Shown here piece after piece: positions 5,820-59,160 of a stretch of DNA of 64,000 nucleotides. Location: positions 62,001 to 126,000 of the forward strand of contig NIVC01002369.1 in NCBI GenBank assembly GCA_002269645.1, written 5' to 3'. The notes below the pieces were generated by a model. That model saw only the letters and a program-made list of their open reading frames with translations, did no database searches and had not been told where the DNA came from. Position 1 is the first letter of the stretch; each line of letters begins with the position of its first letter. Both the position numbers and the translations under genes were made by a program. This DNA is from Macrostomum lignano. Its lineage: Eukaryota.

Positions 5820-8101
5820 ATGTCTTTCAAATTGTTGCCCAAGTCTACAGAAGAGTTTTCTGATACCAAATTTTGGGAAGGATTTTTTAAGACACGCGGA
5901 AGCAAGGCGTTTGAATGGTATTTCTTTGATTTTGTGTTATCACGGATTTAAATAAGTGATTAATTATTGATTTAATGCTAATAAAATACTTCTAGGTATG
6001 GGGAATACCAGGACATGGTGGAGTTGTGGGCACAGTATGTGAAAACTGGCGATCGCGTACTCAACATTGGCTGCGGCAATTCCAATCTGGGCGCTGAGTT
6101 GCACGACTATCAAAACTGCGAAGTCCTGTGCATTGACACCAGCTCCACTGTGGTGCAACAGATGTCACGAAAGCACAGTAAACGACCCAAACTATCCTAT
6201 CGCGTGATGGACGCCGCCAATCTTGAAGGCCTCGATGATGGCAGCTTTGCCTGCGCTGTAGACAAAGGCACCCTTGATGCTTTGATGTCGGCCGCAGATT
6301 CCTCTATTCAAGCTGTTGTTGATGGCATGCTGGCCGAGGCGCATCGGGTACTGCGGGTTGGCGGCAGGCATCTCATTGTTAGCCTTTGTCAGAAACAAGT
6401 TGTTGATAAACTAGTGCAGCACATCTCTCTGAGGTTTGTGAATTTGTCTTATGTTCTTTTTGGAATAAAAATCCCCTTGGAAAGAAATCTTACTAATCAT
6501 GTGAAAACCTGCCACTCATTCCTTAAAAATCTCATTTGTATCCCGTGCGAAATCTTAGATTTATCCAGTGAGAAATCTCCCATTTATCCAGTGAGAAATC
6601 TCCTATTTCTATACTTATTATCTCCCATAAATTTTGCAGGCCGTGGATAGCCCGAGTCCACCAGGTCGCATCAACATCGGCCTCGGACTCTTCCGGCTTT
6701 CCTTTGCCGGTGTTTTTTATCGCCCTAACCAAACTGCGCCCAGCAGCAACGGCAACTGCAGTCTCTTCCATAGTGCAGGTGCAGGACGCCTATTCCACTG
6801 GACCGCCTGAACGACTTGATTCAGTGGCCAGCCTCACTGATTGGATTCGGCAAGTTCAACTAACAGCTTATTCCTTGTCTCGATCTTCCGGTATGGAAAT
6901 CAACAGCACTGATGCTTTCGGCGATGCCGACAGTCAATGCCGGGTGACTCAGTTCAGTTATTCTTGCGGTCGCACCGGTTTGCCAACTTTCACCTGTCAC
7001 TTGTTGACGCATGTCGCTACATCGTCTCGTCGACGTACTGGCTACGCTGTCTTTATTGAACCGTTAGGATCGTCTGCCTGTCGATTGTCGCCTAGCGATC
7101 GGCGAGATCTGCTAGAATCGCAGTCTAATTTGCGTCGATTATTATTTGTTAAATTGCATCCCTGGCTGCACTACCAGTCGGACACAGCGTTGCAAGCTTC
7201 GCTGTCTCGCCTAGTGATGGCATTTGCGCCTAAGCCTGGCATGCCAGAGTCTCAGGTGCCTTTCTTAAGCACTGGCCGGCTAGCTTATCCTTATCAGTCA
7301 GTTGCTACTCGAGTTGGGTATATTGTTGAACAATCCGAGGATGATAGTCAAACTAAAGAGCTCCGATTGCTACGCCCGGAAAGCGACCTGTCGCCGCTGC
7401 TTTGCTGCGCCAATGCCGCTCTGGTCAAGTCAGTGTCATCGACCGTCTGTTCCGACATTGTTGCTGAAGCTGGCAACAGTCCGTTGGGTCGCCTGCTAGA
7501 TCAGCTTATTGGTATTAGTAGCGACACCAACCCATGTGCTTTGATCAATTGGCCTTGCAATCTTGACTGGCTGTTGACGTACAAGCATCGTCAACCTGAG
7601 AGGCCGCCTCCGAAGCTGTACGTGTCTGCATCGTCTCCGGCTGTTAGCCTTCTTGCCGAGTATTTTAACCTCACCTGGACTGCTACTAAGCAGCCGTTTG
7701 CATTGGATTCTCGGCACCGTCTAGTGGTTCTGTTTCCTCCTGCTGACTCTCTGGCATCATATGCTGCAGCTGTGACACCCGAATCTATTGCTAGCCTAGC
7801 CAGTGCTATAGAATCGGACGGCTGCTTGCTGCTGGCTACTAGACTATTCGATTCTAAGCAACAAGTTTCGAATATTAATGCCGGAGCTGTAGATTCGCTG
7901 CGTCAGTGTAGTCAATTTGTTGACGTCATTTGCGCTGCCTTTTCTGATGAGGATGTCAACGTTGAACAGGTAGAAATTGACGAGTCCGCTGAGCATCGCT
8001 GTCGTTGGTGGATTGCCTGCGCTCTGATGTCGATTGAATCGAAGTCTTTGATTGAAGACTTTCTTGCTGGTTTGCCTGGCTGTCAACTGATTAAAGCTTG
8101 A
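5820..8101 (+). CDS. METTL13: eEF1A methyltransferase METTL13 ortholog; exons 5820-5917, 5996-6433, 6640-8101 (665 aa)
   Basis: Spliced translation MSFKLLPKSTEEFSDTKFWEGFFKTRGSKAFEW|YGEY...VLNIGCGNS...VDKGTLDALM...MLAEAHRVLRVGGRHLIVSL...R|PWIARVHQVA...LPVF...QVPFLSTG matches METTL13 motifs. GT-AG introns with consistent phase 2/2; total 1998 nt. Confidence 0.93.
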
Positions 8102-8338
8102 GCTGACTATGATGAGTTACGGCAAAAAGTAGATTTTGTGTTTTTAGAGAACATTAAAGGTCATTTTGAAGTCAGTTGTAAAATAAAATTATGAAAATTT
8201 GATACTCTATGTGAGAAGCATTTGTTGTCATTATTGACCAACAGTTCTGCCAATTCTTTTAACAACACGTCGCTTTTTGTGTCTTTTTTCAATTTTTAGC
8301 TTCTAGGTTAAAAGTTTGTGTTATTAGGTTAGGCAAAA

Positions 8339-8408
8339 GTGATGATATTACTGGTCCGTGTTTCTGAGCCACCCGTATTGCGGTGCTGCTGATAACTACC
8401 AGATCTGA
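8339..8408 (+). ncRNA. SNORD18: Box C/D snoRNA, U18/SNORD18-like, copy 1 (most diverged)
   Basis: C box GTGATGA, guide TGGTCCGTGTTT + D' box CTGA, terminal D box CTGA, closing stem GGCA/TGCC. The guide is complementary to conserved LSU rRNA AAACACGGACCA. Confidence 0.85.
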
Positions 8409-8463
8409 ATGCCTTTGAGGATGCGTCTATTTATATTAGACTTTATTAGATCCATATACAGCA

Positions 8464-8536
8464 ATGATGAGATTTCTGGTCCGTGTTTCTGATTACCCAT
8501 TCAAGCGGTAATGCTGTTACTTTTTACCAGAACTGA
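8464..8536 (+). ncRNA. SNORD18: Box C/D snoRNA, U18/SNORD18-like, copy 2
   Basis: ATGATGA...TGGTCCGTGTTTCTGA...CTGA with CAGCA/TGCTG terminal stem. Confidence 0.85.
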
Positions 8537-8576
8537 ATGCTGTTTAAATTAGTCTCAAAACCTGAAATAATCAGCA

Positions 8577-8650
8577 ATGATGAGATTTCTGGTCCGTGTT
8601 TCTGATTACCCATTTCAAGCGGTAATGCTGTTACTTTTTACCAGAACTGA
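8577..8650 (+). ncRNA. SNORD18: Box C/D snoRNA, U18/SNORD18-like, copy 3
   Basis: Same boxes and guide; CAGCA/TGCTG terminal stem. Confidence 0.85.
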
Positions 8651-8691
8651 ATGCTGTTTAAATTTAGTTTCAAAACCTGAAATAATTAACT

Positions 8692-8764
8692 ATGATGAGA
8701 TTTCTGGTCCGTGTTTCTGATTACCCATTCAAGCGGTAATGCTGTTAATCTTTACCAGAACTGA
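8692..8764 (+). ncRNA. SNORD18: Box C/D snoRNA, U18/SNORD18-like, copy 4
   Basis: Same boxes and guide; weaker AT-rich terminal stem. Confidence 0.8.
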
Positions 8765-8857
8765 AATTACTTAGTCTATGAAGGTTGGGTTTATTGATTA
8801 ATTAAGGCAGGTGTTTTTATACTGTTACTATCGTTAATTTCAGCTTAAACTGACAAC

Positions 8858-9704
8858 ATGACCAACACAAGGGTATTCGCCGCGGCACGCGTACATGTTT
8901 GCCAGGATTTCCGACGCCGCGGTGCCCTCCCGCTGTCCACCTACATGCGGGTGTTTAAACGCGGTGACATTGTCGATATTAAAGGCAACGGCAGCATACA
9001 GAGAGGTATGCCGTATAAAACCTATCACGGCAAAACTGGCCGCGTGTACAATGTCACACCACACGCTGTCGGTGTGATTGTTAATAAGCAGGTAAGTTCG
9101 CGTAAAATTTATACAGAGTCCTGAATTTTAAAACTCCTGACCACTTGTAGTCACCCTGCAATGACTGTCAGTCCTGTCACTTGTGTAACTCACCTGTCAT
9201 TTTGTGTAACTCACCTGTCATTTTGAGTGACTCACCTGTCATTTGAGTGACTCACCTGTCATCTGAGTGACTCACCTGTCATTTGAGTGACACCTGTCAT
9301 CTGAGTGACACCTGTCATCTGAGTGACACCTGTCATCTGAGTGACACCTGTCATCTGAGTGACACCTGTCATCTGAGTGACTCACCTGTCATCTTAGTGA
9401 CTCACCTGTCATCTGAATGACACATAACGATCGCCTCACCACCCCACAAATTCACCAGGTGCGCAACCGCGTGATCCCCAAACGGATCAACGTCCGCATC
9501 GAGCACGTGAATCCCAGCAAGTGCCGACTGGACTTTCTTCGCCGCGTCAAAGAGAACGACATCAAGCGACGCGAGGCCAAAGCCGCTGGCAAGAAAATCT
9601 CCCTGAAGCGTCGGCCGCAGGGTCCGAGGCGCGCCACCATTGTGAAGACTAAGAAGAACAAGCCCCAGCTGCTGGAGCCGCTGCCCTACGAGCTGATCGC
9701 TTAG
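8858..9704 (+). CDS. RPL21: 60S ribosomal protein L21 (eL21); exons 8858-9091 and 9459-9704; residues ~5-17 frameshifted as assembled
   Basis: [54 protein letters not shown]|[17 protein letters not shown]...; donor CAG|GTAAGT, acceptor CACCAG|GTG, phase 0. Confidence 0.95.
9172..9416. repeat. 18-20 bp minisatellite (GAGTGA(CT)CACCTGTCATCT) in the RPL21 intron
   Basis: About 12 tandem copies seen directly. Confidence 0.9.
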
Positions 9705-9940
9705 GCATTAAAAGGGGCCTGCGTAATTCTATACAATATTACATCTAGACTCGAGTAATGGGCAAATGAATTTTCAATTCCGAGAATTATGAAATAAAAA
9801 ACACCGGCCTGTGGTTGTGTTGTTGTTGGACAACTAAAGCTCTATTGGATGAAAGAATTGCGTTAGTGTTGTGTTGCTTCTTTTGATGATAATATAATTA
9901 GCTTTTTCTATTGACTTTCGGCTTGTTAGGCTGCAATGTA

Positions 9941-10305: not shown

Positions 10306-13300
10306 ATGGCAACCGCTGTGCTACCTCCGCCGCCGTCAATGCCGGATCCGAACTCCTCTGGCGGCAGCTTCAGTCCGCTAACTCTGTTCGAATGCACCAT
10401 GACCAATGCCGGCATGCTGGTGGACAGTATGCCAGTTAGGGACCTGGTCTCGGCCCTGCGCATCATTGGCACTCTGCACACTCACGTTGTCAACATCATG
10501 GACCCTGGCGTGGCCAGCGTGTGCGACCTGGCCGATCAGTTCAACTCTCACCGGATTAAATGCCCCGCTGCCGCTGCCGAGACCGCCGCCGCCTCAGCTG
10601 CCGCCGCCGCCTCAGCTGCCGCCGCCGGCGAGGCCGAGCAGTCGCCAACTGCCAACTCCTCACTAGACGGAGGCGGCAACGCTAAGAAACGCTTGAAACT
10701 GGACGATAATTCTATGGCCTCATCGTTAAACGATCAGAATTCTACGGATAACAATCAGACACTTAATAACACCGCTTCAGCTGCTGCCAATGTCAAATCC
10801 GAATCTGTTGCCGAATCTGATGATGATTGCTGTATCCTTGACGACGGCGGCTTAGGCCTGATTGGTTCCGACTTTTACACCAGCATGCAGCAGCAGCAGC
10901 AGCAACATCAGCCTCGCAATCCGCAGATATCCTCAGCAGCTTCAGCATCTGCCGCTCCACCCTATGGCGGTCCCGTGCAAGATTCGGCAGCTATGAAGCA
11001 GATTTTACGCAACACCTACAAAGCTATGCGAGCTGGCGGTCCGCACCTATACGATTTTAATAGGCCGTGAGAGATTCATCTGTGAATTTTCTATTGGGTT
11101 TGTTAAATATGACAGATTATACTACTGAATTGAGAGTAGCTTAATACTGCATGTGCCTCACAATTTATTAGCTTGAGCTTAAAAATCAAGAAATTATACT
11201 ACTTAATTGATAGTAGTTTAATTGCACATGTACAGACTTATTAATGCTTCTCAGTAATCATTACTGCGGTTTAAAAATCTCAGAAGAGACTACACTACTT
11301 AACTGAAAGTAGTTTAATAGCACATGCACGGGGTTATTTATGCTTCTCTTGAATCATTTCTACAGGTTTTAAAGAATTAAAAGAGATAGTACTACTTACT
11401 GTAATAATAAGTAGTTTAATAGCACATACGCATAGTTTTTCATTCCTAATAATCGTTTTCTCCCTACCCTCACTGCCTTGTCTGCGCCAGCTGGAACGAT
11501 CCATTGAACCAGTCCGTGACTGAACGAATTGTCAGCCAAATTGTTGCCACAACGCCTGACATTTCCGTGTCTCCAGACGACTGGCGAAGTGAGTGCAGCT
11601 CCATTTTGAATGTGTATAAAAATTATTGTGTGATTTGTATATACGTAGATATTGAAACATTGGCGCGGTAGCATTTGCAGAGGTTTACAACCCCCAGTTA
11701 CTGTTTCATTATTATTAATAATAGTATTATTATTACTATCCTCATCCTCAAAATGAGAGCCTGATGCTCTCTTGACGCACTGATGAACCATTAATTGTAT
11801 GAATTAATTAACTCATTAAAGCATTAATTGGCCTGTTAACAATGCATAGTGCCGAGTATAAACAATAATAATTCCGCTGCAAATTCTAATGACATTTAAG
11901 GTCAGTCAGTCTCTATGCAGTTCTAAAGTCTATTCGCATTTTTGCAGCCCAAATGCTCAGACTATGGGAAGAAATGCATCCAAGGCGCGATGTACAGTTG
12001 AAAAAGCTTAGAGACAGGAAATATTGTCGAGTGAAAAGAGTAAGTTAAACAGTATGAGGAAATATATATTAATTTAGCCTTAAAAACTACTGCCGTGTGC
12101 AAATGATACTACTGCCCGCGTGAATTTAAAACTCAGCCAAAACAACATTAGTTTATGCTACCTTTTAACTCTACACTGAAACACTTGGACTGTAGAACTG
12201 TGCAGTCAGTTAATCGGGCAGCTAATGAGCAATCCGTCTGGCAGAAATCTTGATTTGAAACGTCAGACCATGAGAAAGTGCGGCAGATTGCGCACCGTAA
12301 GAGACTTTTGCTACTTACAGGGGTGGGGAACTCCGGCCCCCCGGGCCCTGTGACACTTAACTCTCTTTCTCTCGCCTCTTCTCTCTCGCCTCTCCTATCC
12401 CCTTTTCTCCTCTCTCTCTCTTATCTCTTGTGTCTCTAGTAAACAAGTTTGCCGACCCCTGTGCTACTAGAAGATTCTGTAGCCGTTTGTTATTCCTGCT
12501 TTCGCAATCCTCTGCGAACTGCATTATCGTTGCGCTAATAAAAAGAATCCGAAGCAATGCTTAGTAGGATGTGTTGGGCATGGTGATGTCTCTCTATCTG
12601 ATAAATTTGCAGGCAAATGTGCCGTAGCAATATTCACCCCGCTGCATAGGGAGACGGTTGTCAAGCACGAGGATAGGAAGCGGGTTAAACGAAAATATTC
12701 CCGAGTTTCCGCTGTAAGTTGACCTTGATTTCTAAGAAATACCAAATACCAAACCCTCGCCCTCACCGTTTCCTCTGCGAAAGTCGCCGACATTTGTATA
12801 CAAAATAAATAAAGCACAGCTAATTTTGTTTTAAACTGTCAATCCTATCTGTAGTTCGATGCAATTTGACATTGTTTGACAATTCCGCGTCAATGAAAAG
12901 CGACGCCGTGTTGAAATACGAGGCCAGAAAGCGGTCAATGCGTAAATATGCCAGAGTTAGCTCTGTAAGTAGTATATGCTTGGGGGAAATTGTCCGCTAA
13001 CACTTGAACAAGATCTCTGCAAATTAAAACCACAAGTGCCCGTTAACCACCAAAGTTTCACTGTGTACTTTTTATTGGGTTGGAATGCTTATTTTACTTT
13101 AAACACTTGCAACTAATGATGTCTAGGCGGTATAGACGAATTTGTGCGCACCGTTTTGGACGAAGAGATGCGCAATATTAAATCGCGTGGTTATAAACGG
13201 CGCTATAGCCGTATTACTGCGGTAAGTCTCATTAACCCGGGGTGTGTGTGTGTGTGTGTCTGCCTGTCTGTGTATGTGTCTGTCTGTCTGTCTGTCTGTC

Positions 13301-14976
13301 TTAGTGTCTGTCTGTCTATCTGCCTGTCTGCCTCTGTCTGTCTGTCTGTCTGTGTAGTGTCTGTCTGTCTGTGTGTCTGTCTGCCTGTCTGTCTGTCTGT
13401 CTGTGTATGTGTCTGTCTATCTTGTCTGTCTGTGTGTCTGTCTGTCTGTGTGTCTGTCTGTTTTTGTCTGTCTGTCTGTGTGTCTGTCTGTTTGCCTGTC
13501 TGTCTGTCTGTCTGTCTGTTTGCCTGTCTGCCTGTTTATCTGTCTGTCTGCCTGTCTATCTGTCTGTCTGTCTTAGTGCCTGTGTGTCTGTCTGTCTTAG
13601 TGTCTGTATGTCTGCCCGCCTGTCTGTTTGCTTGTCTGTCTGTCTATTGGCGTTAACCTATGTATTAAAAATCCAAGCCCTACCTAGGCTGTCTGTATTT
13701 AGAGTATATAGAAAACTGGGCAAATTAGAAATTCATTCAAGCCACTCAGAAGTCCTTTTCTCAACCTCTGCTAGTCGCTTTCCGTTGTGTATTTAACTTT
13801 TATTTGCTGGTTTTGAGTGTTTTTACTTACTATACTCCAATATAACTATGCGGTTCTGACTAGGACTACTGTACCATATAATGTTTGACGATGGCCGCTA
13901 CACTGGTAGCGAGGGCGGTTCTTGCACCAAAAATCGACTCAAATATTGGCGTCGTTATAGGCGAATCTCTACAGTAAGTTCCCTCTGCACTTGTCATATC
14001 GGCCTAAGCAACAGTTATTATGTTGCTTGCCCTTAGCAACAAAGACTTTATATGCTGAACAATAGTACACAAATACCTTGTATTGCATACAGCTTTAATT
14101 AAGGAGATATTGTTTACAAAGCAGCAAGCTGATCTGGCCGCCGCGCGGAAACGCATGCGCGTACGCTGCGTAAGTTCAATTGGTCAGAATTTATTGATCT
14201 CGGCTTTTTTACATCATATACCTACTCAACCCGCTACTGATAGTAATATAATTGGGTCTGAGCACTTGTTTTATAGTTTCTTTTTGTCTACAGATTGGAG
14301 CTTCATTAGAAACCTGCAAAAAAATCTAAACAAGCTGCTTGGACTTTTCTATAATTGATGTACGTCTAGGTCCCGGGTTCGAATCCGCGTCGCGACTTGC
14401 ACCAATTCGGCTCTTTAGGCCCTGCCTGACCACTAATGCATAGCAACAGAAATTTGTGGAGATGCTGGGGTGAACCGCAATAAATGGAGACCTATTCTTT
14501 CCTAATAGGAGGTCTTTGACAAACTTGACTCCCACGTCTAATTAAATCCTGACTAAATATTAGAAAGTGTATGTTCTCAGGAGTCACTGCTCACCACCTC
14601 CCCCCCCCATTACTCGCATCGCCATCCAATGCAGAAGCTGTCCCGTCGTCAGAAGGCATTCGAGCAAGTCCTGCCGTCGCTGAACCCGGACGATCTAGAC
14701 AAGTATCGAGTTGTGCTATCGCGCGATTTCACTTCGTCAGACGAGGAGACTGAGGACGAATCCACTGGCGAGACGGCCCTGCGAGTTCGAGAACTTGTTT
14801 GGGAGTCGCAGGAGGTCCGCCAGGTGAAGCAGCGGCTAGATCAGACGTTTATGAATCGATTTGCCACGCAGAAGCAGCGAGCCACGCTGCAGCGCTGCAT
14901 TCGAAACGCCGGCTGCACGAGTTCGAGGACGCCACCCGCTGAAGCGCCGGACTGGGCTCTGCGAGCTCCCGAGTGA
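10306..14976 (+). CDS. C14orf93-like protein: constant exons 10306-11066, 11491-11588, 14635-14976 plus one of seven alternative exons (425-439 aa)
   Basis: Exon 1 ends AGG CC|GTGAGA. Exon 2 (GCCAG|C...CGA A|GTGAGT) gives [24 protein letters not shown]. The last exon (GCAG|AAG) gives KLSRRQKAF...FTSSDEETE...[21 protein letters not shown]...SSRTPP...PDWAL, resembling the C14orf93-family C-terminal motif order. Family call is from recalled motifs, not a search. Confidence 0.8.
11118..11432. repeat. Diverged ~95 bp tandem repeat (3-4 copies) in intron 1 of the C14orf93-like gene
   Basis: Recurrent TACTTAA(T/C)TGA..GTAGTTTAAT(T/A)GCACAT. Confidence 0.55.
11666..11685 (+). promoter_or_regulatory. 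Candidate docking site (CGGTAGCATTTGCAGAGGTT) for competing RNA pairings
   Basis: Its reverse complement AACCTCTGCAAATGCTACCG is matched over 8-18 nt upstream of each of the seven alternative exons. Confidence 0.65.
11921..12039 (+). CDS. Alternative exon A: (I)[39 protein letters not shown]
   Basis: ATGCAG| ... AGA|GTAAGT, 119 nt, phase 1 to 0, open. A second in-phase acceptor lies at 11947. Confidence 0.8.
12196..12296 (+). CDS. Alternative exon B: (K)[33 protein letters not shown]
   Basis: CTGTAG| ... ACC|GTAAGA, 101 nt, phase 1 to 0, open; weak pyrimidine tract. Confidence 0.7.
12318..12461. mobile_element. Small hAT/Charlie-like MITE inside the exon cluster
   Basis: TIRs CAGGGGTGGGGAACT / AGTTTGCCGACCCCTG; near-8-bp duplication TGCTACT(T)A / TGCTACTA; CT-rich interior. 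Confidence 0.65.
12613..12713 (+). CDS. Alternative exon C: (S)[33 protein letters not shown]
   Basis: TTTGCAG| ... GCT|GTAAGT, 101 nt, phase 1 to 0, open. Confidence 0.8.
12855..12964 (+). CDS. Alternative exon D: (I)[36 protein letters not shown]
   Basis: TCTGTAG| ... TCT|GTAAGT, 110 nt, phase 1 to 0, open. Confidence 0.8.
13127..13221 (+). CDS. Alternative exon E: (S)[31 protein letters not shown]
   Basis: GTCTAG| ... GCG|GTAAGT, 95 nt, phase 1 to 0, open. Confidence 0.8.
13241..13645. repeat. (TG)n/(TCTG)n compound microsatellite between exons E and F
   Basis: Seen directly; explains the VCLS-type ORFs. Confidence 0.95.
13864..13973 (+). CDS. Alternative exon F: (R)[36 protein letters not shown]
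   Basis: CTGACTAG| ... ACA|GTAAGT, 110 nt, phase 1 to 0, open. Confidence 0.78.
14093..14169 (+). CDS. Alternative exon G: (T)[25 protein letters not shown]
   Basis: CATACAG| ... TGC|GTAAGT, 77 nt, phase 1 to 0, open; shortest and most diverged. Confidence 0.7.
14369..14560 (+). mobile_element. Possible 5'-truncated tRNA-derived SINE
   Basis: B-box GGTTCGAATCC at 14376-14386 preceded by GGTCCCG. No A-box or cloverleaf visible. Confidence 0.35.
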
Positions 14977-47586: not shown

Positions 47587-50500
47587 ATGGCCGAGCTCAG
47601 ACTAGTACTCGAGTACTGCCCATGCCCAGACTCAGACTACGAGCGGCTAAAACGAGCCATTGAATCGAGCGTCCAAGCTGGCCAAGAGGAAATCCTGCGG
47701 GCCTTGGTTAGCAACGATGGTCGCAACCTCAACGACTTCGGCGTGGACGTTCTTTTCGAAGCGGTGGAAGACATCTCGGATCTGTCCGTGTTGAAGTTCC
47801 TTCTGCGCAGGTTGGGCGGCGAAGCCATCGGCCAGGTGCGTAACGAGCTGAATCTGAGCGTCGTACACCTCGCCGCGCTCATCCAAGACCGCGAGCTGGC
47901 CGCGGAGACGATGCAGACGCTGCGCAACGCTCTGGGCGACGGCTGTTTCTCGGTTGTAAGCGGGCTGAACAGCACCGCGGCTCACTTTGCCGCCAAGAAC
48001 AGCAACGGTCACGAGGTGCTGATATGGATCCTCGACAATCTTGGCCAGCAGGCGCTTACAGTGAAGGACTCGTTGGGCGACACAGCTGTGCACCTGGCCG
48101 CCGAGTTCCAGACTGACGAGTGCATGCGGCTGCTCAAGGCCAAACTGCCGCAGAGAGTCTGGCAGGCGCGCGGGGCGCTGCGCCGGACCCCGGTGCACCG
48201 GGCTGCGCTTAATTGCACCGGTGAACAGAGCGGCGACACGCTCAAGTGGATGCTAGAGAATCTCGAGCTGGAGGTATTTAAGAAGCCTGACGCTGAGAAC
48301 AATACGGCTGTTCACCTGGCCGCTCGACACCAGGGATTTGAGTGTATGCAGATGCTGCAAGATTGCCTTGGCGTCAGCTGCTTCTTAAGTCCCGGCTATC
48401 AACTGCAGACGGCGGTGCACATGGCGGCCAGGAATGAGAACGGCTACGCCGCTCTTGAGTGGTTCGTGACAAACATTGGAAGCATCGATCATCTCTGAAT
48501 TAAGGACGCCAACGGAGACACGGCTGTGCATGTCGCTGCCGAATATCAGGACGACGAGTGCATGCAATTGTTTTCAACCCGGCTACCACCCGAGCACAAC
48601 GTCTGGCAGATGGAGGGAGGCTTGAAACGTACCCCGGTGCATCGGGCGGCACTCAATGAGAAGTCGGTCTTGACTCTTCACTGGATTCTGGACTATCTTG
48701 CCAAGCGGCCGGCGATTTTTCAGCTGAGGGACGCACAGGGCGACACGGCGATTCACTTGGCTGCACAGGTGCAGAGCGACGAATGCATGGAACTGCTTTC
48801 TCAGCATCTGACACTCGAAAATCCGGTGTGGAACACCGCCGGAGCGAAAGGCCGAAAACCAGTTCACTGTCTAGCGGCCAATGCAATTCAACGAGAGTTC
48901 TTGAAGGTCCTGGTTGATAAGCTTGGTTCATCAGCTCTTACTGAAGTAGATGAAGAACTGCTAACTGCTATTCACTTAGCTGCCTCCTATCAAAGCCTCG
49001 CTTTATTCCAGTCGCTGGTTAGTTGCGCAGGCAAGGACTCCATTACGCTCAGAGACAAACACGGTTGGACTCCACTGTTCATGGCCACAGGCAACGAGCG
49101 TCACGAGAAAGATGAATCTGTGTTCTTCTGGATGATGAACCAACTGAAGGGAAGTCAGGAGCAAGAACTGGCCAGCAAGGATAGCGACGGTAGGACTTGT
49201 CTGCATTTGTGCGCCCGCAACAGAGCCTTCGGGGCCCAGATGTTTGTTCAATCGGCGCCACAGCACCAGTTCGACGACCCCTCCGATGCGGTCGCGGCGT
49301 CAGTTGACAAGAACGATAGAAATCCGCTGTTTTTGGCCTGTCTGTTGAAGAACTTCAACTTTTTCAAAGCGGAATTTATCGACGTGAAACGGCATATGTG
49401 CATCGATTCGGTGGGAAACACTGCTACATGCGCTGTTCCTCACCTCTGAGTCATTCCCTAACCGGGACTTTGACGCGGACGAGTTTGTGTCAGCGGTCAA
49501 GAAGCTAATCGATGGAGGCGTTGATCCCAAGGTGGAGAACAATGTCAAGAAGAATTGTTTGATGAGCGCTGAGTTCAGTCAGCGCACGCTATACGACGTG
49601 TTGGTGAGGCTTTCCCACCTGCCGGAATTGAAAGAGGCATTCAGTAGGCTGCAGAGAAACTCCGACGGCTTGCATGTTGTTCACGTGTTTTCCGGCCGTT
49701 ACGACATCAGATTCTTAGAAGCTCCATTGAAGCAGCTTTTCACGCTGAGCTCTGACAAACTGTTAAATATTCGAGTGTCGTCGGGCTCGCTTAGCGGAGC
49801 AACTTGTCTGCACTTTGCCTGTGAAGCCGGTCACGAGGAAAACCTGAGGTTTCTAATTGGCAAAGGTCTCTGCGATGCAAGGCTTGGTTGCGAGACAGCT
49901 TCCGGTCAGACGTGCGTTGACTTTGCGTGCAACAAAGGAAAGCTGGACGTACTCAGAAGCGCCGCTGCTGATGCTGGGGTCGATCTGAGGGAGATTCTGC
50001 TGCTGGTCGATCCGGTCAAGAAGGCACTGCAGCTGCCAGACAAAACCAGTGCCAGGAATCTGCTGTCCCTATTCACTGACCCTGTCCTGAGATCCGATAT
50101 TGAGAGAGACAGAGGATTGCCCACAGCTGGGGATGAAGCTGAAGGACAGGCATCTGCTGCGGAGTCTGCCGACGTTAAGCTGCTCATCCGAGCTCTGGAA
50201 CTTGACTCTACAGAGATGCTTCGAAGCCTTGTAGTGCTGGATTACATCACTGGAGACACGGATGATCGTCTTATCAAGGCGTTGCGCAAACGATATCAGT
50301 CAAAGAATCCTAGTCAGCAAAAGTACTTTCCAAATATGGAAACACTGGATTCGATAGCTACTACTCGGACGGAATTATCGCTACTGGATTGCGTCATATT
50401 CTTTGATAAGGCAAACCTGCTATCCGACTTGATGGTTCTGCCACAGTTTGACATCATACCTCAGACACTGCGGCTGCTAATCAACATGACACCTCAAGTT

Positions 50501-53451
50501 GAGATGCGAAGAGGAAGACATGAACAATTGAGCGAAATGATGAAGCAAGCCCTGAACGTTCTCACTAATGTTCTCGAGCAGTTGTACGTCAGAGCCGATC
50601 AGAACGAGCGTGAACTTTTGTTCCGCTACTTGACTGCGGACTTCAAGAAGGATGAAGTGAGCGGTCCGAAGTTTCAGGCTCCGTTAAAAAAAATTCGTCG
50701 ATAAAAATGGCAAAGTTGTGGCTCCGTTTTCGGGCCCAGCGGAATGCTTCTCGGTCATGCAGCTGGTCGACACAGTCGATTGCGACGAGCTGTTTGCAAC
50801 CAACTGCCTCAGCAGCATGATCGACGAACAGTGGAAGAAACCGCCTCCTCTGTCGTGGCGTACAAGCAGTAGAAGTCAACCGTGCTGCCCGAGCTTCAAT
50901 AGCAGTTGCAGTCCTGGCAGCCGACCTGACGGAGTCCCTAGCTTTTTATTGTCAGTTCGATTTCGAGTCTGGATTCACATGGTCTTCTTCCTCTTCTTTC
51001 TGTGCTTCTTCTCCTGGTACGTAACGGATTTTGGCCAGTCGTTGAAGTCGCAGGCCGCGGCTGTGCACATTGTTGATGCAGTCATGTGGATGTTCGCTTT
51101 ATCATTCGCCACGCAGGAGATAAATGACATGGTTAATAGGGGAGAACTCAAAGATACCTACGCTTGGGGAAGGCATCTGAAAGTACCCAGGTACTTCACA
51201 GATTTATTTAATTATTTTGATCTGGCCGCAATCTTACTGCTGTTGGCTGGGCTCATACTCAAAATAGTGAGCACGGGAGGCGATACAACCAGCCTGCACA
51301 ATGCCCAAGTAGTACTGAGCGCGTCCTTTCTGCTCTGGGGATTTCGGTCGGTATCCCTGCTTAGCTACTTCAAGGTCACTGGACCAAAAATATCGATGCT
51401 GAAAAGCCTTCTATTCAGCGACTTGGCCCCATTCCTGATCATAATGCTTGTGCTGGTCTATTCGTTTGGCATATTCTACGTGAACTTGCTATTTCCCGTG
51501 ACCCTCTCTACTGCGAGCATTTTACGTGACTCGGAGTCCATAGCCAAGCAAGTGTTCTCCCTGCCGGTCTCGCTGGCGTTCGGCTTCTTTGAAGGCGCCG
51601 AGAGCGTAGTGTGCAACGGGTCCAGGCAGACTCTGGAGGCGTGCTCAGACCATGCCGGCTACCGGGCGTACAGCGGCCTGGTAATGTTCCTCTACTTGCT
51701 AATCGTGAACATAGTGATGTGGAACCTGCTAATTGCACTGTTTAACCTGAGAGTCACAAGGATGGACACCAAAGCAGAGGTGATTTGGCGTAAAAATCTG
51801 TACGAGATGCTGGTCGAGTTTTCCGAGGTCAGCCCGTTTCCACCGCCGTTTTCGTTTCCTCATTACATTTGCAAGCTGGGGCGGCACGCGTGTCGGCGTC
51901 TGGAGAACCGTCGTTCGGTTCAACCGGAAGAGGCAAGTACAATCAGCACTTTTATTTAGCGTTGACTTATGATTTAAAAGACCATGCAAATTTTTCTGTG
52001 GGCTGATTTTCCGCTGCAAATGCAAAGGTAAGGAAGCTTCCAGTTTTTTAGCACTAAATTCCCAATGTATCACCTTCTGGGCTTTCGAATTCCAAATGAG
52101 GCGCAAAGCTGACTACGAACATGTTTCGTTTGAGGTGCACTCATAAATTTATCAAGCCGTTTTTTCATGAAATACTACCGGGAGACCGGCAAACATGTAA
52201 AGTTCCTTTTGGCGAAGTGTCTGTTGTTCCTGTCTCTTTAACGGTAGAACTACCAAGGAGGGGACCCTTGCAAATTTTTCGACGCAACCAGGCACTGGAA
52301 TTTCAAGAAAAAGGAATAACTTTTGTTGCGCAGCTTCTCAAAAGAGTCAAGTCGCCAGTCCTCCGGATCGCATCTAAATTCATCAGCACGTCGATGCACG
52401 TCGTACCTGCATCAGCTCTGACATAGTTGGTCCCTGGCCTTCACCCAGGCGGAGCTTTCGGACCCTTAGCAGATGGCACCAGGTGGCTATGGACATCCCG
52501 GGGCAAATTTCTCTATAGTTTCGCTGATCAAGCCTCGAAAGTTGAGCAACAGAGCAAGCATCAATTGCTATAGGTATCCGCAATCACTCTCTCAAGCATT
52601 CAGTCGTCTTCCAGACGCCGTCGCCTGCTTTACCGGTCTGTACGTAGCTATCAGGCGACTATGAACACCCTTATTGTGAATTTCTTTGTTGTCTCTGGTC
52701 AAGCCCCGTTGTTCTTGAATTTCATGTGCCAGAGTGACTCCGTTCCGGCGCGCAGCAAAAAAACTGTTTCCCTTTTTTGGTCGTTCAATTAACGGGCGGA
52801 AATGGTTGTAAATTTCCTACTGTTAATGCATTTCTTTAGGATTATTAGCGCGTACTACGTTCCATAGACCTATTTAGCGCCAGGCAAAAGAAGTAAAAAT
52901 TTGTCAAATATTTGTTTAGAAAACACAACCTGTACTCTTGAGCGCTGCCATTCTCCGAATAATATTTTTCCTTAGACTTTTCTCGACGTCAACTCGACGA
53001 AGTATCGTGTTGTTAATTTTACTGTCGATTATCGATAGAAATAAGTACCTTAACAGTTTTCGACGAATCTTACACTTAAATGGTAACAGCTTTCATCTTC
53101 TCGCAATGAATTTAGAAGCAGAGTCCACCCTGGTGGCAGGAACGCAGTAGTTTTCACGACTATCCCAACGACTATCGGCAGTTTCTGGTGTACCAAGCTG
53201 AGCAGCTCCGCCAGTGCCGCCCCCGACTGCGGCAGGGCGTTGAGCGGCACAAAGACGCATTCGAGGCGCTGCGAGCGCACACGGAGAAAACTGTTGACGG
53301 AACTCGCGACGAGCTTGCCAGGATGGTGAAGCGAGAAACACTGGACATCAGAGAGCAGCTTCACAGACTGCGACGTAATCAGAAAAAGCAGCAAAAGCAG
53401 CTGTCGCAGGTGCTCGATTTGTTGAAGCATTCACAAGCGGCAGCAAAATAG
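47587..53451 (+). pseudogene. Ankyrin-repeat TRP-family cation channel, disrupted as assembled (TGA 48496-48498; frameshifts ~49424 and in the A8 run 50686-50693); probable last exon 53116-53451
   Basis: About 17-19 ankyrin repeats (DTAVHLAA, RTPVHRAA, WTPLFMA, ATCLHFAC). Six-TM module with TGPKISMLKSL, S6 VNIVMWNLLIALFN, TRP helix IWRKNLYEMLVEF and PPPF. Coiled-coil tail in 53116-53451. The four ORF pieces join seamlessly once the three lesions are corrected. Confidence 0.85.
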
Positions 53452-57390: not shown

Positions 57391-59160
57391 TCACACGTCA
57401 TGTCTGTAGCGGAGAGGCGGAATGCCCTTTGTGGTTCTGGCAGAGCGGCGGAGTGGCTCTTCAGGCTCCGCAAGATCTGATGCCGCCAACTCATCGCCGG
57501 CCGGAGCCGCCTGGGCCGCCAGCTGGACGTCTTCGGCTTCAGCAGTGGACTGCTGCGGCGGCACTGGTCGCAGGTCCCGGCGATTGCGAATCAGCTCCCT
57601 GCCGCTTTGAGTCAGCAGTCGGTAGTTGCGGTGCTCCGGGTTAGCTTGCGTCACAACGGCTGGCTCCCATCTGAAACCGTGCCGAAAACGAACTGCATCT
57701 CCCTGATTCAGTGTTGAGAGCGGTCGGGCTTGCTGGTCGTAGTGCCGTTTTTGAGCAGCCTGCAGCGGGGCTTTAGAGAATCCGGTTGTTCTGTCTTTGA
57801 GCAGCGCCTCCTCACCTGCTGGCAGCTTCGTACGAATCAACCGACCGAACATGAGCTCGCTGGGGCTGGTGCTCGTACCGCTAATTGGTGAAGCTCGATA
57901 TTCCATTAGCGCAATTTCAGGCTGATCAGCTTTCCTCAGGATGCTCTTTGCCACTTTGACTGCCTTTTCAGCCATCCCGTTGGACTGAGGATATCCGGGT
58001 GACGAGCGCGTGTGCACGAAACCAAACTGTGCAGCAAACTCTTGAAACTTAAACGAGCTGAATGGGGGCCCATTGTCACTGACCAGCTCTTCGACGATAC
58101 CGAACCTGGCGAACATCGACTTAATTCGAGCAATCACCAAGTCAGCTCCAGACTGTTGACCTAACTTTGCCAGTTCGATCCAGTTGCTGTAATAACAGGT
58201 AACGATTAGCCACTTGTCACCATTGAAGTCCAGCAGATCACAACCAACCTTGGTCCATGGTGCATTCGGAATCTGATGGTTCAACAGCGGTTCCTTTGGG
58301 TTGGCCGGCTGAAAAGTTTGACAAGTGCTGCAGTTCTTCACGAAGTTCTTAATGTCCGCTGACATGCCTGGCCAGTACAGAATTTGACGAGCTCGGGCCT
58401 CCGTCTTGCCCGCGCCACCATGACCTTCGTGTAAAATTTGCAGAATCTTTTGCCGCAACGATGCTGGAACAATAACGCGGTCCAACTTCATCAGCACGCC
58501 ATCATTGTAGGTCAAGTCCTCCTTGAAGCTCCAATACGGACGGACAGAGTGGCAAATGTTCCGAAAGTTGCTTGGCCAACCCGTCTGAACAAACCGGGCT
58601 ACAGAACTTAAGTCCGAATCTTTGCGGGTCTCGTCTCGGATTTCTTGCAAACGAATGGCAGAAATCGGGAGGCTCATTTGATGCACCTCCACCTCAATTT
58701 CGTCGTCTAGAGCAGCCTCGGCCTCCGGAAGGTAAGCTCTTGAAAGCGTATCGGCAATCAGCATCTTGGATCCCGGTGCCCAGGATACACGCAGATTATA
58801 TCTTTTGAGTTGGTAAAGCATTCGAGCAATGCGTGGCGGAACATGCAGCAAGTCACGCTTAAAAATAACCTCCAGGGGCTTGTGGTCTGTAGTCACTCGT
58901 ACTACTGGTAGGCCATAGATGTAGTCATGAAATTTCTTGCAAGCAATAACGACGGCCAGAGTCTCCTTCTCAATCTGAGCATAGTTCTTTTGCGTGTTGG
59001 TCAGCGCAGCCGATCCATACGCCACAGGCTGTCCATTCTGGAGCAAAACGCAACCAACTCCGACCGATGAACTGTCAACTTGAAGCTCAACTTCCATATC
59101 GGCGTCAAACAACCTTAGCACAGGAGCGTCCGACAGAACATCTTTTAGCTTCTCAAAAGC
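57391..59160 (-). mobile_element. Ty3/Gypsy pol fragment: RT-RNaseH linker, RNase H and integrase in one open frame
   Basis: AFEKLKDVLSDAPVLRLFD; RNase H D-E-D-D (VDSS, YAQIEKE, TDHKPL, ADTLSR); H2C2 finger (HEGH...CSTC); integrase GCDL, SDNGPPF, SNGMAEKAV. Gag, protease, RT and LTRs are not seen. Confidence 0.92.

Follow-up and report, generated by a model that had tools for sequence, protein, structure and literature searches.

The 64,000-nucleotide stretch of the flatworm Macrostomum lignano genome analyzed here (NCBI GenBank assembly GCA_002269645.1, contig NIVC01002369.1, positions 62,001 to 126,000 of the forward strand; hereafter the window) contains, at 10306-14976 on the + strand, a gene in which three constant coding parts surround an array of small exons. 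The array is probably a mutually exclusive exon cluster, and we judge it likely that one ancestral internal exon was tandemly duplicated into six or seven alternative exons, one of which is used at a time. The gene is thus probably a new, largely unconfirmed instance of an established route to protein variants. Four lines of evidence bear on this: the anatomy of the array, the use of its fifth exon in RNA-based gene models, the pattern of substitutions between sister copies of the gene, and the presence of comparable arrays in paralogues.

Seven Small Exons Share Position, Phase, and a Basic Ending

The seven variable exons, v1 to v7, lie between the end of constant exon 2 (11588) and the start of the last exon (14635). 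The parts of the gene are as follows, with changes counted across three gene copies.

10306..11066, + strand: constant exon 1; begins with ATG, delimited by its open reading frame (ORF) and splice site, ends in phase 2, donor GTGAGA
11491..11588, + strand: constant exon 2; ends in phase 1 (one codon base carried over), donor GTGAGT, junction present in RNA-based GenBank models
11921-12039, + strand: v1, 119 nt; intact in the window
12196-12296, + strand: v2, 101 nt; donor GTAAGA
12613-12713, + strand: v3, 101 nt; 100% identical in all three gene copies
12855-12964, + strand: v4, 110 nt; two synonymous changes and one nonsynonymous, splice sites kept
13127-13221, + strand: v5, 95 nt; the exon of the RNA-based annotation
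13864-13973, + strand: v6, 110 nt; 99-100% conserved, one synonymous change, splice sites kept
14093-14169, + strand: v7, 77 nt; peptide ends RKRMRVRC, one nonsynonymous change, splice sites kept
14635..14976, + strand: constant last coding exon; begins in phase 0 after a CAG acceptor, stop codon at its end

The array was first noticed in a sequence-only reading of the window, and the coordinates, lengths, phases, and peptide endings given there for the seven exons, together with the ends of the flanking constant exons, all proved correct. The variable exons are adjacent within one intron interval and similar in length (77-119 nt). An AG lies directly before each of them and GTAAGT directly after (GTAAGA in v2). 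As had been claimed, all seven have a length of 2 mod 3, are open in phase 1 and close on a related basic motif; they are entered in phase 1 and left in phase 0, such that any single variable exon restores the frame of the last exon and skipping all seven shifts it.

The basic C-terminal motif is shared by the ends of all seven exons, v7 carrying the variant KRMRVR, and a hydrophobic xxF is found at residues 6-8 in five of the seven exon peptides (read by eye). The motif [RK][RK][YCM].R[VIL] occurs nine times in the six frames of the 64-kb window, and six of these occurrences are at the 3' ends of v1-v6. In addition, when 11589-14634 was searched mechanically for open frames that are 50 nt or longer and end in GT[AG]AG, exactly these seven exons came back, plus one match, in a different frame, at exon 2's own donor (11589). 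The seven-exon pattern is therefore far beyond chance. In a leave-one-out hidden Markov model (HMM) analysis, v3 and v4 were each recovered with significance (E = 0.003-0.007), ranking first of 2503 ORF segments. An HMM of the variable segment across the protein family was too weak when run against the ORF segments of the window: its top match was v4, at E = 0.12, and v2 reached 1.5. Overlapping the v5 acceptor in another frame, positions 13125-13142 encode RRYRRI, identical to the tail motif of v6, which may be the remnant of a lost exon.

Splice Sites and Reading Frame

Donors are GTGAG in the constant exons, whose CAG acceptors are strong and come with pyrimidine tracts; the array exons have consensus GTAAGT donors and, in four of the seven, TAG acceptors with weak tracts. 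The introns of the array measure 119-642 nt. Because each array exon is 2 mod 3 in length, inclusion of zero, two, or three of them breaks the frame. Moreover, every one of the seven contains a phase-0 stop within its first six codons (codons 2, 6, 5, 5, 3, 6, and 2), and all 21 pairwise double inclusions consequently terminate inside the second array exon. At a background of 0.235 per exon, such early stops would be expected jointly with a probability of ~4e-5, a figure calculated post hoc.

These features suggest a simple scheme. The spliceosome would join exon 2 to one array exon and then that array exon to the last exon, and only single-exon inclusion would give a readable message. Double inclusion would place a premature stop upstream of the last junction, making the transcript a probable substrate of nonsense-mediated decay (NMD). 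The stop pattern would thus fit an exclusivity enforced by reading frame and NMD. As for exclusivity by competing RNA structures, in an ungapped scan of 14-mers (allowing G-U pairs and one mismatch, and leaving gapped or bulged pairings possible), no site in the first or last intron paired with more than two other introns, and shuffled sequences behaved in the same way. Unconstrained duplex energies from RNAduplex were also near shuffled values.

Use of the Array Exons in Gene Models

The predicted protein is 90-95% identical to M. lignano database entries. In two of them, GenBank PAA83431 (BOX15_Mlig033261g1) and PAA69508 (Mlig015124g1), whose loci are sister copies of the window gene, exon 2 is joined to v5 and v5 to the last exon with boundaries exactly as predicted (junction peptides ...SPDDWR/SGIDEF...SRITA/KLSRRQ..., slashes marking the junctions). 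Two junctions foreseen from the sequence alone, 11588 to v5 and v5 to 14635, are thus borne out in RNA-based models. The GenBank annotation of NIVC01 was built from RNA-seq assemblies only (StringTie, TACO, de novo assembly, TransDecoder) (PMC5730564), and the use of v5 is therefore RNA-supported. That pipeline used TACO at --isoform-frac 0.75, a setting at which minor isoforms drop out (PMC5730564), so the lack of other isoforms in GenBank says little. Among other records, UniProt A0A1I8HZA2 and A0A1I8HGZ8 use v2 and then read through, ending 20 codons into the intron, and PAA58491 retains the intron after exon 2. The models would fit one exon per transcript: v5 stands alone in the two RNA-based models of the sister loci, and the paralogue models contain one exon each.

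Sister Copies Indicate Selection on v2-v7 and Probable Decay of v1

A three-way alignment compared the window gene with L001 and L003, the sister copies that the public assembly contains; both have all seven variable exons. The sister loci lie at NIVC01000420:591794-608537 and NIVC01001317:267142-287539. Over v1-v7 jointly, 713 nt, the three copies show 1.3-1.4% divergence and 0 indels. The introns show 25-28 gap events in ~2.3 kb, with mismatches of 4-6% overall and, in individual introns without microsatellites, divergences of 1.2-3.8%, typically ~2.2-2.6%. Much of the intron divergence is due to a (TGTC)n microsatellite of ~100 copies, which makes up most of 13245-13645 in the intron between v5 and v6. 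In L003, the intron between exon 2 and v1 has an insertion of ~3.7 kb (L003 7294-11302).

Taken by themselves, v2-v7 diverge from the sister copies by ~0.8-1.0% and hence evolve ~2.5 times more slowly than the introns; v2 is 99-100% conserved across the copies, with one synonymous change. The AG and GTAAG of v2-v7 are kept in all three copies. Codon changes in v2-v7 comprise five synonymous and two nonsynonymous, giving a ratio of nonsynonymous to synonymous substitution rates (dN/dS) of ~0.12 (P = 0.008, with synonymous sites making up 22.6% of the total). These comparisons argue that v2-v7 are maintained by purifying selection.

The pattern in v1 is different. In L001, codon 19 has changed from ATG to TAG, and in L003 codon 11 has changed from CAA to TAA; no alternative acceptor that would rescue v1 was found in L001. 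All six of the six change events in v1 are nonsynonymous, including the two independent stops, and its divergence, 2.5-4.2%, is intron-like. The contrast with v2-v7 is significant by Fisher's test (P = 0.016). From the stops, the exclusively nonsynonymous changes and the intron-like divergence, v1 is probably a dying exon or decaying pseudo-exon, and it serves within the array as a control, displaying the changes to be expected at this divergence when constraint is lacking.

Paralogues Carry Arrays of Their Own

A HMMER search of 1.84 billion representative sequences returned 283 relatives of the protein, among which at least 14 distinct gene groups are M. lignano paralogues. Four paralogues have arrays at the corresponding position, and a fifth has a single exon there.

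Mlig022551/030333: exons of 95 nt and 77 nt, in the order and sizes of v5 and v7; PAA67809 and PAA69370 on the one hand and PAA53622 on the other, all RNA-based, use different exons
Mlig012439/030636: at least four candidate exons, two of them used, in different models
Mlig018137: four exons, each exactly 77 nt long and clearly alike in pattern, and one 149-nt exon
Mlig000065: at least three alternative exons
Mlig020631: one exon

Exon v7 has the length, and the last position in the array, of the RNA-supported 77-nt exon of Mlig030333. Array exons of paralogues are 98-100% conserved between sister copies and, pooled with the window gene, they give ~9 synonymous against 3 nonsynonymous changes (P ~2e-4). 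One paralogue model, PAA59491, skips the exon and is frameshifted. In the array intron of the paralogue Mlig030333, 9283-9930 and 10858-11797 of locus L004 hold a duplicate of the preceding constant exon and a long ORF that, judged by eye, resembles a mariner-type transposase.

In the two non-Macrostomum genes sampled, the homologous segment is a single exon. In amphioxus LOC118403889 it has the same 1-to-0 phases and a GTAAGT donor (...RKAQ/GTAAGT), and in the nemertean Lineus it is likewise single; the flanking introns of both genes contained no extra exon copies. By this sampling, an ancient discrete exon appears to have been amplified in Macrostomum only. The idea of a tandem array of exons used one at a time, put forward from the sequence alone, is thus supported by shared position, phases, the stops on double inclusion, and the arrays of paralogues; for the window gene, single use itself is documented only for v5.

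We hold only tentatively a broader reading, in which at least five Macrostomum paralogues with 2-7 swappable exons each recode one basic helix. Dozens of scaffold-identical proteins would result, forming a combinatorial repertoire for the recognition of nucleic acids or partners that mutually exclusive splicing generates outside arthropods and that is enforced by frame and NMD, not by RNA docking. One exon of an ancient, uncharacterized bilaterian domain would thereby have become a module for diversification.

Models Place the Variable Exon in One Helix of a Conserved Domain

An alignment of 42 diverse domain sequences was used as input for a confident AlphaFold2 model of the v5 isoform, covering its C-terminal 211 residues (predicted local distance difference test score, pLDDT, 89.9; predicted template modeling score, pTM, 0.73). 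The modeled fold consists of two helices, a 52-residue helix H3 (residues 62-113), and a small alpha/beta unit, and the residues encoded by v5, 67-98, fall wholly within H3. A paralogue isoform with a 26-residue exon was predicted to have the same fold (pLDDT 91.7, pTM 0.80), with an H3 shorter by six residues, exactly the difference in exon length; H3 thus ranges from 46 to 52 residues. According to these models, the 26-37 residues that are exchanged make up two thirds of H3 from its N-terminal end, and H3 is part of a domain of ~210 residues conserved across bilaterians. The variable segment reads, family-wide, ...AC+.YF.S.+D..+R...G....H....RR..R...KL.RRQ, and the exon supplies its hydrophobic start (C..xxF-type) and its basic tail (R[KR]Y.R[VI]).

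The last exon, whose peptide runs ...SSDEE...WES...PDWALRAPE to the stop codon, is the most conserved part of the family. Exon 1 encodes a conserved N-terminal helical region followed by a low-complexity region; it shares 96% nucleotide identity with L001 and L003 and agrees with PAA83431. Within it, 10306-10560 encodes a second conserved region, the N-terminal ~60 residues (...VVNIMDP), common to the M. lignano paralogues, and several shorter HMMER matches cover only this N-terminal region (profile positions ~30-165).

The isoforms would therefore share a common scaffold and carry a basic helix of differing length and surface. The host protein is probably nuclear, and we infer that its isoforms probably bind nucleic acid or a partner differently or are directed to the nucleus differently.

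BEN and Myb/SANT/MADF domains, suggested by UniRef names and by the three-helix pattern, were considered and rejected, as neither Pfam nor a Foldseek search of the PDB gave a match. Indeed, the UniRef names of near-identical M. lignano entries disagree (BEN, MADF-like, FHA, CUT, PDZ, ARID, Ras-GEF, Rho-GAP, Ribosomal_L28e, and others), and because the names differ between near-identical sequences they are no functional evidence. A profile search for named relatives returned six proteins, all "uncharacterized" (from Patiria, Saccostrea, Lingula, Potamilus, Lineus, and Branchiostoma), and no database homologue named C14orf93 was found. The label "C14orf93-like," attached to the gene in the sequence-only reading, is thus unverified, having neither a Pfam match nor a homologue of that name behind it. 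We take the C14orf93 family to be Pfam DUF4616, although its presence in the Pfam copy used could not be confirmed.

An hhalign comparison of the family profile with an unverified sequence of the C-terminal 240 residues of human C14orf93 gave a probability of 86.5% and E = 4.6e-6. The alignment with this sequence is collinear over 174 columns, taking in the N..V helix, AC..YF, the basic stretch, the SDEE patch, and S.R.P. As a lead only, this suggests distant homology to C14orf93. The published description of C14orf93 (RTFC), with no recognized domain and two predicted bipartite nuclear localization signals (NLSs), also fits. The mouse protein, 4931414P19Rik, is described as lacking recognizable domains and as having two predicted bipartite NLSs and a signal peptide, and it is reported to be secreted, in which it is unlike the flatworm protein (PMC10163356).

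Alternative Explanations

Several results weigh against the reading as a mutually exclusive cluster that swaps one helix. No transcript, expressed sequence tag (EST)-like contig, or protein record with v1, v3, v4, v6, or v7 was found in a collection of 5.8 billion proteins, which was queried in two ways: with the full isoform, where low-complexity words probably drowned the signal, and with the seven exon peptides strung together, junction residues included. The seven isoforms originally proposed are accordingly not supported as such, given this lack of records and the stops of v1 in both sister copies. The putative use of v2 comes from models that run on into the intron. In overall sequence the seven exons resemble each other only weakly, v7 least of all; in the leave-one-out analysis, only v3 and v4 were significant, and v7 went unrecovered at rank 530 of 2503. 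The sister copies are only 1-4% diverged, so that the selection test comprises seven substitutions in the window gene, and the early phase-0 stops were noticed post hoc. No mechanism of exclusivity at the splicing step was found beyond frame incompatibility. With regard to the protein, Foldseek comparison of both models with the PDB found no relative (best E values, 0.38 and 2.5), and the flatworm protein and 10 distant homologues had no Pfam match at E<=1.

These points leave room for other explanations. It is unlikely, in our view, that only v5, and perhaps v2, is ever used and that the other exons, left over from tandem duplication, are silent and merely await decay. Such a history would account for the presence of v5 alone in RNA-based models and for the missing records of v1, v3, v4, v6, and v7, and the visible decay of v1 in the sister copies demonstrates that dead exons do exist in the array. 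However, the array exons are highly diverged from each other, which implies that the duplications are old, and yet six of them keep frame, phase, AG, and GTAAG in three copies. Silent relics would also be expected to resemble v1, which displays the unconstrained pattern at the same divergence, whereas v2-v7 evolve more slowly than the introns and with a low dN/dS. Further, among paralogues the choice of array exon varies from one RNA-based model to another, and the annotation pipeline dropped minor isoforms by design. On the favored reading, exons v3, v4, v6, and v7 would be used as well.

A quite improbable alternative is that the array exons serve mainly as alternative last coding exons, ending in the following intron and yielding truncated proteins in which the C-terminal half of the domain is missing. 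The UniProt models that stop 20 codons past v2 are of this form, as are the paralogue read-through models P0165 (RNA-based), P0170, and P0185; in addition, P0004 keeps the intron after exon 2, and stops follow v1 and v3 within 2-3 codons. A terminal exon, however, would need no donor, and perfect GTAAGT donors are conserved on every array exon. Both paralogue exons, like v5, are found in spliced models of full length, the read-through models resemble unspliced pre-mRNA in short-read assemblies, and the last exon, which truncated proteins would lack, is the part of the family under the strongest conservation. That the seven open frames arose by chance in a long intron is hardly credible. The exons are short, and a 100-nt open frame has a chance of ~0.2, but the concentration of the basic motif at exon ends (six of nine occurrences in 64 kb) and the intron scan, which yields only these seven apart from the wrong-frame match at 11589, argue otherwise, and the conservation pattern together with the use of v5 refutes it. 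Tandem duplication into exons used one at a time is thus the explanation that we favor.

Comparison with Known Systems

In architecture, the array resembles the exon 4, 6, and 9 clusters of arthropod Dscam1, insect Mhc, 14-3-3zeta, and the exon 5a/5b pair of vertebrate SCN genes. Common to them and the flatworm gene are tandem exons of similar length, in the flatworm putatively homologous, which lie between two constant exons and have identical splice phases. A corresponding segment is swapped within a single folded domain, the frame is lost when two exons are included, and the array goes back to an exon that is single in other phyla. The analogy with Dscam1 drawn from the sequence alone holds for architecture only; the ungapped scan detected no docking/selector complementarity in the flatworm array. 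The flatworm case also differs from these systems in other respects. Its introns, at 119-642 nt, are not so short that steric exclusion would be an obvious explanation; use of one exon per transcript is documented for one or two exons only; the host is an uncharacterized, probably nuclear protein, not a receptor, channel, or motor; and several paralogues within one species have each amplified this exon independently.

Drosophila lola and mod(mdg4), to which the array had also been likened, share with it a constant 5' part combined with one of many exons that alter a putative binding module. In those loci, however, the exons are alternative 3'-terminal exons, partly trans-spliced, each with its own stop and poly(A) site, whereas the flatworm exons have conserved donors and a common, highly conserved last exon. 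Because the variable exons are internal, the array does not follow the lola/mod(mdg4) design, and that comparison falls away.

A helminth study reportedly describes a mutually exclusive pair of homologous exons in coq-2. There, two exons are switched in a conserved enzyme and the biochemical effect is known, unlike the flatworm array of 6-7 exons in an uncharacterized protein. Apart from the coq-2 pair, literature searches found no such array described for flatworms, M. lignano included, or for C14orf93, consistent with the statement in the sequence-only reading that none was known for this protein family. To our knowledge, arthropods account for most large mutually exclusive exon clusters on record, and other animals usually have pairs.

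A six-exon cluster in a flatworm, paralleled in several paralogues, would be unusual if true and would widen where and how often tandem exon duplication is seen to build isoform repertoires. As a case without obvious competing RNA structures, it would be useful for asking how exclusivity arises. It would also mark one helix as the tunable element of a conserved, uncharacterized bilaterian domain, possibly the C14orf93/RTFC domain, and so offer a handle for finding the binding target of that domain. RNA interference is available in M. lignano. Transgenesis is established in the species as well (PMC5730564), and the predictions about the array are therefore directly testable.

Surroundings of the Array

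Two further features of the introns were observed. The intron between exons 1 and 2 contains a 96-bp tandem repeat in 2.3 copies (11198-11427). The last intron contains, at 14360-14400, a string resembling a tRNA T-arm, GGTCCCGGGTTCGAATCCGCG, which may derive from a tRNA or be a short interspersed nuclear element (SINE), as ARAGORN detected no tRNA anywhere in the window. The neighbors of the gene in the window are as follows.

6015-9704, + strand: methyltransferase-domain gene and ribosomal protein L21e, upstream of the array gene; the order is the same in L001 and L003
34166-35206, - strand: PLK4 polo-box exons
47587-51959: ankyrin-repeat plus ion-transport (transient receptor potential, TRP-like) gene
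57391-59121: RNase H/integrase ORF of a long terminal repeat (LTR) retrotransposon

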